Shown here piece by piece: positions 56,806-64,000 of a stretch of DNA of 64,000 nt; the first letter of the stretch is position 1, and each line of letters starts with the position of its first letter. Below the pieces are notes generated by a model. It saw only the letters and a program-made list of their open reading frames with translations. It did not search any database and was not told the origin of the DNA. Location: NCBI GenBank assembly GCA_964234715.1, contig OZ174291.1; one strand, written 5' to 3'. This DNA is from Podarcis melisellensis. Lineage: Eukaryota. Made by a program: the position numbers and the translations under genes.

Positions 56806-57632
56806 TAGTTACAAACCAGAATGTTTTAACTGCTGTAACCACAAATACCCTTGCTTATCAAGAAAAAGGTAGGAAGTTTTATTCAAACTGTTGATTTAAA
56901 AATACTCCTTTTCCTTGATGATCTGAATCCCCCTCCTTAGAGAGACAGAGAATGTTGCTCACTAGTGGTTTCGAGGGAGGCCAACCATTCCCAAAAGAGT
57001 AAGTATCAATACATGTGCATATGAGTACAGGGGGAAGAGATATGAGAAGGGAAAACAGTAATTTAAATACTTATCATCTTTCATATCTGAATTACTATAT
57101 TTGCAAAAACAGCATATGAAAGACTACTTACGCTGACATACATGTTCAACATGCCAGAAATAGCCATGGAAAAGGGGCTCCAATGTCTGAGCCTAAAACT
57201 GCAAACCAAGCTTGTGGGGAATATTCAATATTTGACTCCATACACAATAGCATTACATGATTAAAAATGTATAAGACCCTATTTGCATGTTTAATTTATC
57301 ATCTGGTGCTGACTGAATCATATTAGATTGCATCTGAAGTTTTTGCCGAGAGTGAGTTGCAGACTGAATTATACAACAGTCTGGCAGGGTTCAGACAGGC
57401 AGTTTTCTATCAAATAACACTGGTTTTAGGCACTGGCTCTGGTAGGAAGAATTTGGACCTTGTTTTGCTTAGTGGCGGTTAAGATAACCTAAACTAAATA
57501 GAGTGATATACCCTGTAATAGTTGGGAGTGTGTGGAAATTGCTCTGTATTATGAGTAATTCAATATGGAGAGTTTAGCATTCTGGGAATCTTAGCTACCA
57601 TATGGTTTGTTAAGCCCTCTAGTATGGGGTCG

Positions 57633-58745
57633 AGGCTGTTAAGGTGCTACACTCAATATGCCAGCAAATCTGGAAAACTCGGCAGTGGCCAGAGGATTGG
57701 AGAAGATCAGTCTACACCCCAATCCCAAAGAAGGGAAGTGCCAAAGAATGCTCCAACTACCGCACAATTGCACTCATTTCACACGCTAGCAAGGTTATGC
57801 TTAAAATTCTACAAGGCAGTCTTAAGCAGTATTTGGACTGAGAACTCCCAGAAGTGCAAACTGGATTTCAAAGGGGCAGAGGAACCAGAGACCAAATTGC
57901 AAACATGCGCTGGATTATGGAGAAAGCTAGAGTTCCAGAAAGACATCTACTTCTGCTTCATTGACTATGCTAAAGCCTTTGACTGTGTCGACCACAGCAA
58001 CCTATGGCAAGTTCTTAATGAAATGGGAGTGCCTGATCACCTCATCTGTCTCCTGAGAAATCTCTATGTGGGACAAGAAGCTACAGTTAGAACTGGATAT
58101 GGAACAACTGATTGGTTCAAAATTAGGAAAGGAGTACGACAAGGCTGTAAATTGTCTCCCTGCTTATTTAACTTTATGCAGAATTCACCATGCGAAAGGC
58201 TGGGCTGGATGAATCCCAAGCCGGAATTAAGATTGCCGGAAGAAATATCAACAACCTCAGATATGCAGATGACACAACCTTGATGGCAGAAAGTGAGGAG
58301 GAATTAAAGAACCTTTTAATGAGGGTGAAAGAGGAGAGTGCAAAATATGGTCTGAAGCTCAACATAAAAAAAACACGAAGATCATGGCCACTGGGCCCAT
58401 CACCTCCTGGCAAATAGAAGGGGAAGAAATGGAGGCAGTGAGAGATTTTACTTTCTTGGGCTCCATGATCACTGCAGATGGTGACAACAGTCAGGAAATT
58501 AAAAGACGCCTGCTTCTTGGGAGAAAAGCAATGACAGGTAAACCTAGACAGCATCTTAAAAAGCATAGACATCACCTTCCTGACAAAGGTCCGTATGGTT
58601 AAAGCTATGGTTTTCCCAGCAGTGATGTATGGAAGTGAGAGCTGGACCATAAAGAAGGCTGATGGCCGAAGAATTGATGCTTTTGAATTATGGTGCTGGA
58701 GGAGACTTTTGAGAGTCCCATGGACTGCAAGAAGATCAAACCTAT
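57633..58745 (+). mobile_element. BovB (RTE) LINE fragment, RT region, frameshifted, with an internal deletion near 58535
   Basis: QQIWKTRQWPEDWRRS, CFIDYAKAFDCVDH, NINNLRYADDTTLMAESEEEL, ELWCWRRLLRVPWTARRSN. Confidence 0.92.
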
Positions 58746-59032
58746 CTACTAGATTACTAGATAGCAAGAAAGTAATGGGAAGTGCCTCTGGCTGAGACCC
58801 TGGAGATCCAATAGACACTACTGGGCTAGATGAGCTGATCCCCATCATGGGCAACTTGAAGCCCATCAATGCACTTCCCATGGTCACCAAGAAGGCCGAG
58901 GTGGGAAGAGAATACTGAACTAAATAGACCCTTGATCTGATCTAAAACGGCTCTTATCTTCTTAATAGGTAAACCTACTATAAGGTTTCCTATGACTCTT
59001 TAGTGATTGCATGTACAAATAGCAAACATATC

Positions 59033-59440
59033 TGTGATGGGACGATGAGCTGCTTGTGCGTAAAATGCAAGTCCCTCAGAGTTTGATCAGGTTTTCAAAC
59101 CTCTGCCTGTGACGGAGCCCCTCCAGCATGGCTGCGTCAATCACTAGTAGAATCCAAAAGTGGCTGCTTTCGGAATCGTTTCCAACATAAAAGCTCTTTA
59201 ACGGAAACACGTCGTCTGGCCTCTCGGCGTGACAGTTTCCGGCGAGGTGTGGGTGTCCCTATAGGAGGTCCTGAGACCTCCCCACTGTTTTCGCTGGAAG
59301 CGTCTCTGAGCCATCCCTCCGACTCACTTTCCCTTGGAGTTCTTGCTCGCCCTCTACTGGTTCCCTCTTCCGCTGCTACTCCTCTCTCAACCTCAGTGAG
59401 CCTTTGCGCCCCCGGCGCTTTAGATGGCAGTTCCCTGACA
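59033..59440 (-). repeat. 3' LTR of the Gypsy element
   Basis: Preceded on the minus strand by the polypurine tract GGAGGGGAGGTGGA (59441-59454). Confidence 0.95.
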
Positions 59441-59886
59441 TCCACCTCCCCTCCAGGGCCCCCTTCACCCCCTCCCGTCTCCTCCCCTACTGGCGGTGAG
59501 GAGGTAAAACCCCTGAAAGAACCTCCTTCGTCTTCCGACGTCGCGAACACTTCCCTCCACTTGTTGCTGTTCCTACTCTCTCGGTAATCTTCGTCATCGG
59601 AGTCCACTCCCTCTTCCAACTCCGACTCCGCGAACCCTTCCATTTCCTCTTCCTCATCGGTGGTGCCGAAATACTCCCTCCTAAACCTTGCTATCGGCTG
59701 AGGTTTCCTCGGGAACCTTTGGTGGAACGTTTCTGTTAAAACCTCGTCATTGACTTCCTCTGCATTCACCCAGGTGTTTTCTGACTCCGGTTCCCCTTCC
59801 CACGCCACCAAATACTCCACCTGATTTCCCTTCCACCTGGAATCGAGGATTTCCGCTACATGGTTGCGGCGTTCCCTCTCTTCCAA
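59137..59886 (-). pseudogene. pol: pol part 3: chromodomain plus acidic FxGF tail plus basic tail, running into the 3' LTR
   Basis: VAEILDSR..VEYLVAWEG.PESENTWV chromodomain; separated from IN by a frameshift near 59890-59925. Confidence 0.85.
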
Positions 59887-59889
59887 GGC

Positions 59890-62309
59890 TGGTCCCCTGA
59901 CGTACTCCCCTTCACGTCCCCCCCGTATGGTGACAGTAACGACCTGTGGAACACTGGGTGCAATTTCATGTGGTTGGGTAATCGGAGTTTGAAAGCTACC
60001 GGGTTGACCTGCTGAATGACCTCAAAGGGTCCCAATCTTCTGGGCCTCAATTTCTTACAACCCCCTTTGAACGGCAACCCTTGGGTTGACAACCACACTT
60101 GATCCCCCACCCTTATGGTTTCACCTTCCCTTCTGTTCTTGTCTGCCTGCTTCTTATATTGTGCCTTAGCCCTTTCTAAGTTGAGCTGGAGCTGATGATG
60201 GATCGCTTCCATCTCTTCTACAAAATGTTCAGCCGCTGGGACGCTCCATCTCTCCCCTCCTTCCCCTGGAAATGCCCTGGGGTGACACCCGTAATTAGCC
60301 AAAAAGGGACTCATCCCTGTGGACACATTCTCCGCATTATTGTAGGCAAATTCTGCCAACGCCAACTTTTCGACCCAATCGTTCTCTCTGTCATTGACAT
60401 AACACCTCAGATATTGTTGAAGAATGCCATTTGCTCTTTCCGCCTGCCCGTTGGTTTCAGGGTGCCGGGCAGTTGAAAAATTGACTTCCACGTGCAGCAA
60501 GCTCATGAGCTTCCTCCAGAACCTGGAAGTAAATTGTTTGCCGCGATCTGAGATCACCCTCAAGGGAGCCCCGTGCAACCTAAAGATGTGTTCTACAAAC
60601 AACTTCGCTGTTTCTTCTGCTGTGACTGCATGTGAGCATGCTACAAAGTGGCACATCTTAGTTAACAGGTCTACTACTACCATGATGGCTGTTTTCCCCT
60701 TGGACTTTGGCAGATCCGTCATAAAATCTATTGATATCGCTTCCCAAGGCCGTTCTGGTGTGGGTAATGGTTCTAATAACCCTGCCGGCGCCCTTCTTTC
60801 CCCTTTGGCTCGCTGACATTGGTCACACCCTCTTACATACTCCCTTACATCTTCCCTCACCTTAGGCCACCAAAATTCCCTGGTAACCAACCACATGGTC
60901 TTGTGTTGTCCAAAATGTCCCGCCGTGGGGCTATCATGCAACTGCTTGAGTACTCTCCCCCTCAATTCACCTTCGGGTATATACAGTGCCCCTTTGTAAT
61001 ACAATGCCCCATTTCTTTCCTCAAAACCTCCGGGGCTCTCGCCCTCCCCCCTGAGACCTCTGAGCTTATCCTGGGCATATTCATCATTTTCCGTTTCCTC
61101 TACCAGTTCTCGTTGCCCCACCAGCGCCGCCCCACACACCCAGCGGTCCTCAGGGATGACATGTCTCTCTTCGATCACCCCCTCCCCTTCCCAATACTCT
61201 GGTTTGCGTGAGAGCGCGTCCGCCCTGACGTTTTCTGGGCCTGGCACATAACAAATTTCAAAGTTGAATTTGGAGAATTCCTGTGCCCATCTCACTTGTC
61301 GTTGGTTGAGCACTCGAGCTGTTCTCCAATACTCTAAATTCTTGTGGTCGGTGCACACTTGCACCTTGTGTTGTGCCCCAATTAATAAATGTCTCCACCT
61401 CCGGAATGCTTCGTGAATGGCAAGTAGTTCCCTGTCATACACCGTGTAATTCCTCTCGGATTTATTCAGCTTCCGCGAGAAGAAGGCACACGGTCTCCAC
61501 TCCGACGCACTCCTCCCCGGTTGAAGAAGGACCGCCCCTACCGCCCGGTCGGATGCATCGGTTTCCACTCTCATGGGTTTTCGTAAATCCACATGCAGAA
61601 GTTGTTCTTCCGAGGCGAAAGCCCTTTTCAGTTCTTCAAAGGCTCGATCCGCCTCTACCGTCCAAACAAATTTCTTCTTGCTGCTGAGGCAGTCGGTGAT
61701 GGGCGCCGTCAAGTGGGCAAAGTTCTTGATGAACTTCCGATAAAAGTTCCCAAACCCCAAGAATCTTTGCGCGTCCTTCTTGGTCTTCGGTGTCTTCCAT
61801 TCCAGTACCGCTTGGACCTTGCCTGGATCCATGGCCAATCCCTTGTCTGACAAGCGGTACCCCAGGAATTCCACCTCCTTGGTATGAAACTGGCACTTCT
61901 CCAGTTTCACCCACAGCTGGTTGGCTTGCAGCCTGCCCAACACTTCTCGAACGTCCCTCACATGCTGTTCCTCATCTTCCGAATACACCAACACGTCGTC
62001 TAAAAAGGCCACACAATTCTTGTAGAGCAAAGGTCCCAGAATGTGGTTTATAAAAGCTTGAAAACACGCGGAGCCCCCTTGTAGACCGAAGGGCATAACG
62101 AGGTATTCAAAGGCTCCCAAAGGGGTAAACATGGTGGTCTTCCATTCATCTCCCTTCCTTATGCGTATCAGATTGTACGCCCCCCGCAGGTCCAGCTTTG
62201 TAAAAATCTTTCCCTTCCTTACTCTGGTCAAAATGTCATCAATTCGGGGCATAGGGAAAGCCAGGGGCTCCGACACTGCATTGAGGGCCCTAAAGTCACA
62301 CACCAGTCT
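59890..62309 (-). pseudogene. pol: pol part 2: RT (FLDD), RNase H (TDASD), integrase (HHCC, D-D-E, GPF)
   Basis: 815-aa ORF 59856-62303 with canonical Gypsy motifs. Confidence 0.95.
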
Positions 62310-63110
62310 CGTTTGTCTGTGTTCTTTTTGTCCACAAAAAACACTGGGCTGCCCCCCACCGCTCGGGACTCTCTGATGAAACCTCGCTTCAGGTTTTTGT
62401 CAATGAACTCCCTCAGCTCCTGCATCTCCCTGTCTGACATGGCGTACAGTTTGCCTACTGGGAGTTGGGCCCCAGGGAGTAGGTTGATTTGACAGTCAAA
62501 GGGTCTATGCGGTGGCAGTTTGTCTGCTTCCCTTTCGCTGAATACGTTGCTCAGATCTGCGTATTGCGGGGGCACCTTCCCTTTGTCCATTACTTCCATC
62601 CCGGCTAGGGTGACTCTGTCTCCTCCCGAAACCTTCCCCTCCTTGCAGTGTTCTAGGCAATGCGCTGACCCAAAGGAGACCACCCTCTGATGCCAGCCCA
62701 CTAGCGGATCGTGTAGCGCCAGCCAGCTCATCCCCAAAATGATGGGCGCTCCTCCCAGGATGGCCACATTAAACGCTATCTGTTCGGTGTGCCTTGCCAC
62801 CCTCATTATCATCGGGACAGTCTGTTGGCTAACTTCTCCCCCCAACAGCTCTCTGCCGTCAATCGTAGTCACCTGCAAGGGGTTACTTAAAGGGATGGTC
62901 TGTATCTGGTGCTCAGCTGCAAACTCCTTACTCATGAAATTACAGGAGCTGCCTGAATCCAAAAGCGCCTTGATCTTTAGTGGGTGTCCGTTTGGCAGGT
63001 CTAGTAACACCTCTATCACTAAAGCGGGTCTGGGAGGTTCCGGCATGGGCACTTTCACTGCTCTTTGGCCTGGCTGCTGTGCCCCGACGGTGGCAGCCAG
63101 GCGTTGGCTT
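62310..63110 (-). pseudogene. pol: pol part 1: aspartic protease (ALLDSGSSCNF) and RT N-terminus, in the -1 frame relative to gag
   Basis: ORF 62228-63226; frame breaks at about 62309 (KKNTDK-R/RLVCDFRALN). Confidence 0.9.
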
Positions 63111-63116
63111 TTACTT
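63047..63116 (-). other. Candidate -1 ribosomal frameshift pseudoknot at the gag/pol overlap
   Basis: 10-bp stem GCCTGGCTGC/GCAGCCAGGC; loop GGGCAC can pair with downstream GTGCCC. Confidence 0.65.
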
Positions 63117-63426
63117 GCTCCTTGCCTTCCTCTTCCTTTCCCCCAACAGCTCCTGCCATCCCTTGCCATTCCTTTCTTTGTGGGCAGACTCTGGCAAAGT
63201 GCCCTGGCTGTTGGCAGAGATAACATCTCTTGGCGCTCCTTCCCTCCTTCTTCCGCCCTTCACTGGGATTTGAAACTGCGCGCGCCCGCGCTGTTCCAAC
63301 TTCCATCGGCTCTGCCGGCGGGAAAGGTGGCTCTGGAATGTCTGGAATGCGGAACTCCCTCCAACGGTCTCCTTTCCCTTCCCGCTTTTCCAAAGCCCTC
63401 GCCTCCTGGCGCGCTCCTATGCACAA
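63055..63426 (-). pseudogene. gag: gag C-terminal remnant with CCHC zinc knuckle (CYLCQQPGHFARVC); capsid region missing
   Basis: Only ~370 nt separate the 5' LTR from the gag stop; no ATG ahead of the remnant. Confidence 0.85.
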
Positions 63427-63440
63427 GCTGGCTTTCGGTG

Positions 63441-63451
63441 ACTTTCGGATT
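63441..63451 (-). promoter_or_regulatory. Self-priming primer-binding site (AATCCGAAAGT), complementary to LTR 63572-63582
   Basis: No TGG tRNA-type PBS; 11-nt perfect complement of an LTR segment, as in Tf1/sushi elements. Confidence 0.75.
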
Positions 63452-63453
63452 GC

Positions 63454-63861
63454 TGTGATGGGACGATGAGCTGCTTGTGCGTAAAATGCAAGTCCCTCAG
63501 AGTTTGATCAGGTTTTCAAACCTCTGCCTGTGACGGAGCCCCACCAGCATGGCTGCGTCAATCACTAGTAGAATCCGAAAGTGGCTGCTTTCGGAATCGT
63601 TTCCAACATAAAAGCTCTTTAACGGAAACACGTCGTCTGGCCTCTCGGCGTGACAGTTTCCGGCGAGGTGTGGGTGTCCCTATAGGAGGTCCTGAGACCT
63701 CCCCACTGTTTTCGCTGGAAGCGTCTCTGAGCCATCCCTCCGACTCACTTTCCCTTGGAGTTCTTGCTCGCCCTCTACTGGTTCCCTCTTCCGCTGCTAC
63801 TCCTCTCTCAACCTCAGTGAGCCTTTGCGCCCCCGGCGCTTTAGATGGCAGTTCCCTGACA
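63454..63861 (-). repeat. 5' LTR of the Gypsy element
   Basis: Direct repeat of 59033-59440; 2 substitutions found by eye. Confidence 0.95.
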
Positions 63862-64000
63862 ATATCCAACCATTTTGATCTTCCAAGCAAAAAATTGTTA
63901 AAGCCTTGAAAACCAAATGTTCACAAACCCACACAAAATACAACTCAATTCTCTACAATGTAGACTGGCATACTGAAATTAAAATATATGCTTTGTGGTG

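Follow-up and report, generated by a model that had tools for sequence, protein, structure and literature searches.

The question raised by this locus is why a retrotransposon integrase should end in two short acidic peptides resembling those by which host proteins dock on chromatin-associated partners. The window analysed here, a stretch of 64,000 nucleotides from the lizard Podarcis melisellensis (contig OZ174291.1), contains on its minus strand a 4.8-kb Ty3/Gypsy chromovirus that houses both peptides, termed modules below, in its Pol tail. Integration-site choice sets the harm that an element does to its host as well as its own persistence. To our knowledge, few integrase-host tethers are understood, these being LEDGF for the lentiviruses, BET for the gammaretroviruses, and Sir4, AC40 and TFIIIB for the yeast Ty elements, and we know of no tether for vertebrate chromoviruses besides the chromodomain.

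The element was delimited by a pair of long terminal repeats, between which lay four open reading frames, the last of which extends into the 3' LTR:

63454..63861, minus strand: 5' LTR of 408 bp, defined as a direct repeat and by alignment with the 3' LTR
63055..63426, minus strand: short Gag-like ORF with one CCHC zinc knuckle (Pfam zf-CCHC)
62228..63226, minus strand: protease ORF (Pfam RVP_2, gag-asp_proteas)
59856..62303, minus strand: RT - RNase H - integrase ORF of 815 aa (Pfam domains)
59918..59924, minus strand: homopolymer run, the frame-break site between integrase and chromodomain (mapping of P0154)
59137-59886, minus strand: chromodomain and tail ORF of 249 aa (PF00385, then the tail)
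59033..59440, minus strand: 3' LTR of 408 bp, TG...CA, defined as a direct repeat and by alignment with the 5' LTR

The LTR pair, with the ends TGTCAGG...CATCACA, differed by 2 mismatches over 408 bp and was flanked by a 5-bp target-site duplication, GATAT, at 63862-63866 and 59028-59032; the near-identity of the LTRs and the presence of this duplication indicate that the insertion is young. The internal part of 4.0 kb was arranged in the order short CCHC ORF, protease, RT-RNaseH-integrase ORF, and chromodomain and tail ORF. Pfam matches within 59856..62303 were to RVT_1, RT_RNaseH, Integrase_H2C2, rve and SH3_Tf2-1, the integrase thus comprising zinc-binding, core and SH3 domains. With its LTRs and target-site duplication, its PR-RT-RNaseH-IN order and a C-terminal integrase chromodomain, the element belongs to the chromoviruses, and its nearest relatives carry annotation as Gypsy Pol proteins of Podarcis. 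The closest comparison was with the Podarcis muralis Pol P0154, to which the C-terminal part of the integrase was 98% identical. As this intact protein aligned to the element in three frames, the copy in the window has two frame breaks, both of them upstream of the tail. One is the protease/RT junction and the other is the homopolymer run at 59918-59924, the length of which varied among copies in four sequencing runs; in this copy the RT-RNaseH-integrase ORF and the ORF for chromodomain and tail occupy different frames. The element is free of N.

Several further observations were made on the element and its surroundings. Approximately 400 nt (63055-63452, minus strand) separate the 5' LTR from the protease ORF and encode some 120 residues with the one CCHC knuckle, and no capsid domain was found in this interval by Pfam. 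As the family is nevertheless abundant and this copy young, the Gag that it needs may come from another element. The Gypsy 3' LTR has as a neighbour, within a few hundred bases, a fragmented reverse transcriptase of the non-LTR (LINE) type at 57624-58417 (plus strand), hence the element sits in a repeat-rich stretch. The interval 59300-60100 (801 bp) was covered by 1711 contig pieces from one organism and 819 from another (public runs X1 and X7), which implies a high copy number of the family in two lizard species or more.

The C-terminal part of Pol was resolved into the following features:

59716..59859, minus strand: integrase C-terminal chromodomain, ORF residues 10-57 (Pfam PF00385, E=9.4e-10)
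59632..59688, minus strand: module 1, 19 residues (R67-F85), with the anchor RFRREYF, the linker GTTDEEEE and MEGF
59563..59631, minus strand: variable acidic spacer between the modules, column identity of about 0.35 among relatives
59506..59562, minus strand: module 2, 19 residues (K109-F127), with the anchor KWREVF, the linker ATSEDEGGS and FRGF
59441..59505, minus strand: purine-rich pre-LTR segment (polypurine tract region), coding for a Gly/Glu-rich stretch
59137..59440, minus strand: LTR-encoded C-terminal extension of Pol, about 100 codons, with a basic LLCWKRF-type end

The methyl-lysine cage of HP1 is formed by Y24, W45 and Y48. Relative to HP1 (1kna), the chromodomain of the element has Asn in place of Y24, retains Trp at W45 and has Glu in place of Y48, and most relatives likewise keep only the Trp of the three cage aromatics. 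With a single cage aromatic left, canonical methyl-lysine reading by this chromodomain is doubtful, and the conserved modules beyond it suggest a second or replacement targeting device.

The initial annotation had quoted two strings lying after the chromodomain. Both were recovered verbatim on the minus strand and in a single frame, that of the ORF at 59137-59886, and the Pfam match to PF00385 placed the chromodomain before them as described. The C-terminal ends that had been given for the two strings were exact, but the starts, at 59676 and 59553, omitted the first three to four residues of each module. Beyond module 2, the Pol frame crosses the polypurine tract and continues through about 100 codons of the 3' LTR to a basic end (RRR..VK.LLCWKRF..). 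This end is kept in the relatives P0160, P0155 and P0002, and a similar one is found in the distant P0014; it would seem from this that U3 is partly coding, and the integrase end encoded there may be nuclear-localisation-like.

To what extent such modules arise from composition was assessed with 200,000 composition-preserving shuffles of the 90-residue tail, scored for a full module with at least four acidic linker residues. At least one module was obtained in 0.02% of shuffled tails and two modules in none, although at this threshold only module 1 of the window qualifies, the linker of module 2 having three acidic residues. At the same threshold, about 154,000 background residues of other proteins contained no module except in the family member P0270, and none was found elsewhere in the six-frame translation of the window. 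The modules are not due to chance or composition.

Relatives were gathered by an exhaustive HMMER search and a word-indexed protein search. They included the Podarcis muralis proteins P0154, P0155, P0156, P0158, P0160, P0003, P0005 and P0013, the Podarcis lilfordi protein P0270 and two further contigs (L001/P0002 and L002/P0014), with integrase identities to the window of 69-98%. When the 249-aa tail ORF was the query, the word-indexed search returned a single truncated match, and with the chromodomain and tail alignment it returned one additional sequence, P0270. No match was found in JGI metagenome contigs scanned with the same alignment, and an ESM Atlas feature search with the tail gave no usable match.

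Every relative that reaches the tail was found to have a module at the same position, and most have both. The initial annotation had named loss of conservation or of frame as fatal to its proposal; in natural relatives both modules proved to be conserved and in frame. The module pattern was used to choose 19 instances for alignment, drawn from 12 natural copies of lacertid and mainly Podarcis origin. In this set the anchor Phe and the Gly and last Phe of xGF were present in 19/19 instances. The first position of xGF was F, L or M, strict FxGF being present in 14/19 instances and [FLM]xGF in 19/19, and D/ExEx[FLM]xGF fitted 12/19. Linkers were 8-9 residues long, of which 3-7 were acidic, and each contained 1-3 S/T-x-x-D/E sites; an aromatic residue or Leu stood 4-5 residues before the anchor Phe. 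In module 2, the W, the F and F-x-G-F were invariant in all relatives extending that far. Mean pairwise identity was 0.78 at the key motif positions versus 0.35 in the rest of the tail (permutation p<1e-5), and the inter-module spacer differed freely among relatives in both length and sequence. Conserved islands of this kind, within a fast-evolving disordered tail, are as expected of functional linear motifs.

Conservation of this kind could reflect constraint on either the protein or the DNA. On the latter account, the modules would have no function at the protein level and would be a by-product of purine-rich DNA near the polypurine tract, or of a cis element, their recurrence being due to descent. 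Purines are indeed abundant in this region, which precedes the 3' LTR by 65-250 nt, and the copy in the window is itself frameshifted. Substitutions relative to L001 were compared between segments, and are given as pN and pS instead of a formal dN/dS, since synonymous sites were saturated among the three lineages for which DNA was available (pS 0.6-0.98). Module 1 gave a pN of 0.21 and a pS of 0.72, module 2 a pN of 0.25 and a pS of 0.90, and the chromodomain a pN of 0.19 and a pS of 0.68, as compared with 0.46 and 0.60 for the segment just downstream. The DNA of module 2 was 59% identical to that of L001, with W, F and FRGF kept by other codons, and 9/12 of the residues common to the two copies differed in codon. 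By contrast, the polypurine tract and LTR start, a true cis element, shared 92% nucleotide identity with L001, which indicates constraint at the nucleotide level there and provides an internal contrast to the modules. The retention of the same residues through different codons indicates that selection acts on the protein.

Differences among genomic copies were in agreement with this. Contigs of four public runs were aligned to 59300-60100, and the 33 best-supported tail-ORF differences listed were mapped to codons, 48 further differences existing beyond these. Among those listed, module 1 had two differences, both synonymous, and module 2 had three synonymous differences along with three linker changes (G to E, E to D and A to E) that retain or increase acidity; none of those listed altered an anchor or xGF. 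The conservation of both modules that the initial annotation had proposed for checking was hence borne out as protein-level purifying selection, by pN/pS, codon usage and copy differences alike. Because the modules keep their residues although their synonymous sites have reached saturation between lineages, because module 2 is far less conserved as DNA than the genuine cis element, and because same-composition shuffles so rarely yield a module, an origin without protein-level function is considered very improbable.

A different question is whether the modules match a known class of motif. TND-interacting motifs (TIMs), the TND being the TFIIS N-terminal domain, have been defined as having an obligate short helix with an F/V/L/I anchor and an acidic linker, 8-16 residues long, in which D/E/G/S/T are enriched and which CK2 phosphorylates; FxGF is optional in the class, yet essential for LEDGF and HRP2, and tandem TIMs are known from host proteins (PMC9987994). 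The consensus of the IBM (IBD-binding motif) is D/ExExFxGF, and in MLL1 a helix with F129/F133 lies upstream of F148-x-x-F151 (PMC8022399). Contact between FxGF and the LEDGF domain is conserved from humans to Drosophila (PMC6877644). The architecture ascribed to both modules at the outset, of an anchor Phe, an acidic linker containing Ser/Thr and F/M-x-G-F, agrees with the published TIM/IBM definition (PMC9987994, PMC8022399).

Structure prediction with AF2 from an 11-sequence alignment gave a pLDDT of about 90 for the chromodomain and of 45-54 for the tail, consistent with disorder, and the only helical turns predicted in the tail were residues 69-72 and 111-113, which fall on the two anchors. 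The linkers, at 8-9 residues, correspond to the lower bound of the published 8-16. In the window, the MEGF that ends module 1 is preceded by a complete acidic prefix, and the FRGF that ends module 2 has Gly at -2. A CK2-type S/T-x-x-D/E site was present in every instance, these being candidate phosphosites by sequence pattern.

A profile of the 19 instances was also searched against 177,635 PDB sequences. The top match, which was not significant (E=0.41), was 5yi9_A. In this chain the LEDGF IBD is fused with JPO2/CDCA7L, and the profile aligned to the JPO2 IBM EDTDSETEDFAGFTQSD. As a control, a profile built from the module of a sister family (described below) gave a spurious match to citrate synthase at E=0.012 in the PDB, hence the E-values of such short profiles are not reliable, and with the control outscoring the test profile only the identity of the top match is informative. 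That this match happens to be among the very few chains with a bound IBM is notable. The raw tail gave only chance MHC matches against PDB sequences.

It is thus highly probable that the modules are functional short linear motifs in a disordered integrase tail: they sit in frame within a disordered segment, show conservation and protein-level selection throughout a lacertid chromovirus clade and fit a published motif definition. The identity of their partner is held with less confidence. The IBD of LEDGF/HRP2 is favoured because of the invariant xGF and the match to JPO2, though at slightly under an even chance. Counting against this assignment are the linkers at the lower bound of the published range, the Met or Leu in place of the first FxGF Phe in module 1 of the window and its closest relatives, the Gly at the consensus -2 position in module 2 of the same copies, and a small taxonomic breadth, the named relatives all being from Podarcis. 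Acidic-aromatic motifs are, moreover, promiscuous.

The modules might be functional and yet have another partner. This could be a different TND protein (IWS1, TFIIS, Elongin A, MED26 or PPP1R10), or something unrelated that recognises acidic-aromatic peptides, for instance a coactivator domain or the surface of a histone, and the consequence for the element (targeting, nuclear retention or transcription) would then differ. Conservation and protein-level selection demonstrate function and not the identity of a partner, and several elongation factors have TNDs with a shared binding logic (PMC9987994). Patterns of other linear-motif classes were scored on the 19 instances. The anchors fitted a generic diaromatic helix, W-x-x-x-F/Y, in 11/19 instances and B56 LxxIxE fitted 6/19, though both leave the invariant xGF unexplained, and the FGDF, gamma-ear, AP2, SIM, FFAT and PIP classes fitted 0/19. 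The x-G-F that invariably follows the acidic linker is the very element singled out as essential and specific for LEDGF/HRP2 (PMC9987994), and the LEDGF-bound IBM was the sole motif retrieved from the PDB. A partner other than LEDGF/HRP2 is accordingly regarded as rather unlikely.

It was also considered that the modules might act without any host tether. Within the proteins of the element itself they could fold onto either of two basic parts, the integrase/chromodomain or the LTR-encoded Pol terminus, as a means of autoinhibition or DNA mimicry; or they could make up a PEST-like signal for stability that depends on CK2. The tail is strongly acidic, rich in P/E/S/T and followed by a conserved basic C-terminal end, and the integrase and chromodomain are binders of nucleic acids and nucleosomes. 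Charge alone, however, leaves the invariant Phe, Gly and Phe at fixed spacing unexplained, particularly as the spacer varies freely, and this possibility is judged improbable.

Each module comprises a predicted short amphipathic helix with an invariant Phe anchor, an acidic CK2-type linker of 8-9 residues and [F/L/M]-x-G-F, which is the architecture of TIMs of the LEDGF/HRP2 type. Under the favoured assignment to LEDGF/HRP2, an integrase multimer, carrying two modules per subunit, would dock on the IBD of LEDGF, which reads H3K36me3, or on that of the paralogue HRP2, in a manner resembling that of the host partners JPO2, MLL1 and IWS1, and so tether the intasome to the chromatin of transcribed genes. 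From the match to the TIM class we infer TND binding and regulation through CK2 phosphorylation, and an effect on integration-site choice would follow if such binding occurs. That docking on the IBD skews integration towards transcribed gene bodies is possible, if somewhat doubtful. The location of a single insertion, which the initial annotation had placed in an intron of a broadly expressed gene and taken as fitting, carries no weight on integration preference. The full proposal, that a lacertid chromovirus evolved tandem host-like LEDGF/HRP2-binding peptides which tether its intasome to H3K36me3 gene bodies, and which may replace its cage-less chromodomain, is likewise put forward tentatively.

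Tail types were compared across a maximum-likelihood tree built from 130 integrase regions. In it the double-module family, with 9 rows, and a second family from Podarcis, with 8, formed one clade with a support of 100, in which the rows without a motif label were truncated proteins. The nearest relatives outside this clade, from Anolis, Rhineura, Gekko and another Podarcis family, were without modules. In the second family within the clade, the sister Gypsy family of Podarcis muralis (P0044, P0152, P0153 and P0162-P0166), a different and nearly invariant module was found directly after the chromodomain, consisting of an aromatic helix-like DYFDDWLF, a Ser/Thr linker, FQGF and then an acidic run, perhaps another form of this device.

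Elsewhere, Anolis carolinensis proteins P0167-P0175 have a conserved DEEENLGF about 45 residues past the chromodomain, which fits the IBM consensus save for Asn in place of the first Phe. Fish and frog lineages had basic RGRP-rich tails, and many chromoviral tails (P0021, P0029, P0041, P0046, P0097 and others) began with APRPRGRPRR, contained AT-hook-like GRP repeats and ended in ..SPEY. Most of the remaining matches, chiefly from metagenome assemblies, stopped within a few residues of the chromodomain. Judged by these tails, separate chromovirus lineages seem to bear separate tail devices. Two of the proteins retrieved were host gene models containing Gypsy integrase segments, namely P0157 (Podarcis muralis, vomeronasal type-2 receptor-like) and P0181 (Rhineura floridana, a TM9SF2 isoform), which are probably intragenic insertions absorbed by gene prediction.

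Full-text searching of about 8.4 million papers and preprints turned up no account of an FxGF, TIM or IBM motif in the integrase of a retrotransposon; the initial annotation had likewise known of none in a chromovirus. The concept is not wholly new, as it has precedents in the contact of the MLV integrase tail with BET, in the reported imitation of a host protein by Ty5 and in the FxGF-LEDGF contact shared from fly to human. The modules plausibly represent a new form of integrase tethering by host mimicry. If LEDGF/HRP2 is indeed their partner, the element would become the first retroelement outside the lentiviruses shown to use that hub, reaching it via peptide mimicry. The TIM/IBM motif class would then extend to mobile elements, a natural and compact gene-body tethering peptide would be available for comparison with lentiviral targeting, and a genome-wide insertion bias would be predicted in lacertid lizards.

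Among known systems, chromodomain-directed chromoviruses belong to the same class of element and share with it a C-terminal integrase chromodomain. These are held to read histone marks through that domain, whereas the chromodomain in the window keeps one of the three HP1 cage aromatics. Short C-terminal integrase peptides that bind host proteins also occur in the yeast Ty1/copia elements, in which the Ty5 integrase targeting domain binds Sir4 and the Ty1 integrase binds the Pol III subunit AC40. The binding of Ty5 to Sir4 depends on phosphorylation and has reportedly been described as imitation of a host protein. Ty1 and Ty5 differ from the lizard Gypsy in the element itself, the motif, the partner and the target chromatin. 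The integrase of the gammaretrovirus MLV similarly has a motif in its C-terminal tail, for the ET domain of BET proteins, but this motif is Trp-centred and not an acidic FxGF, its reader is the acetyl-lysine reader BET, and its targets are enhancers and promoters.

The cellular IBMs/TIMs of JPO2/CDCA7L, MLL1, IWS1, PogZ and ASK, and of JIL-1 in Drosophila, have in common with the lizard modules their disorder, a Phe-anchored helix, an acidic Ser/Thr linker and D/ExExFxGF, and occur as tandem copies within one protein as in the lizard tail. Unlike these, the lizard candidates are part of a retrotransposon Pol, behind a chromodomain; their linkers are at the short end (8-9 residues), with Met/Leu substituted for the first Phe in module 1 of the closest copies. 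Lentiviral integrases would share with the lizard element both the host domain, that of LEDGF/p75, and the expected outcome of integration in transcribed gene bodies, if the proposal holds. The HIV-1 integrase site on the IBD overlaps that of FxGF (PMC8022399). Lentiviral integrase, including that of HIV-1, binds the IBD via a folded catalytic-core dimer, whereas a host-like linear peptide in the C-terminal tail is proposed for the lizard element, and the lizard mechanism would therefore constitute a convergent use of the same host domain.
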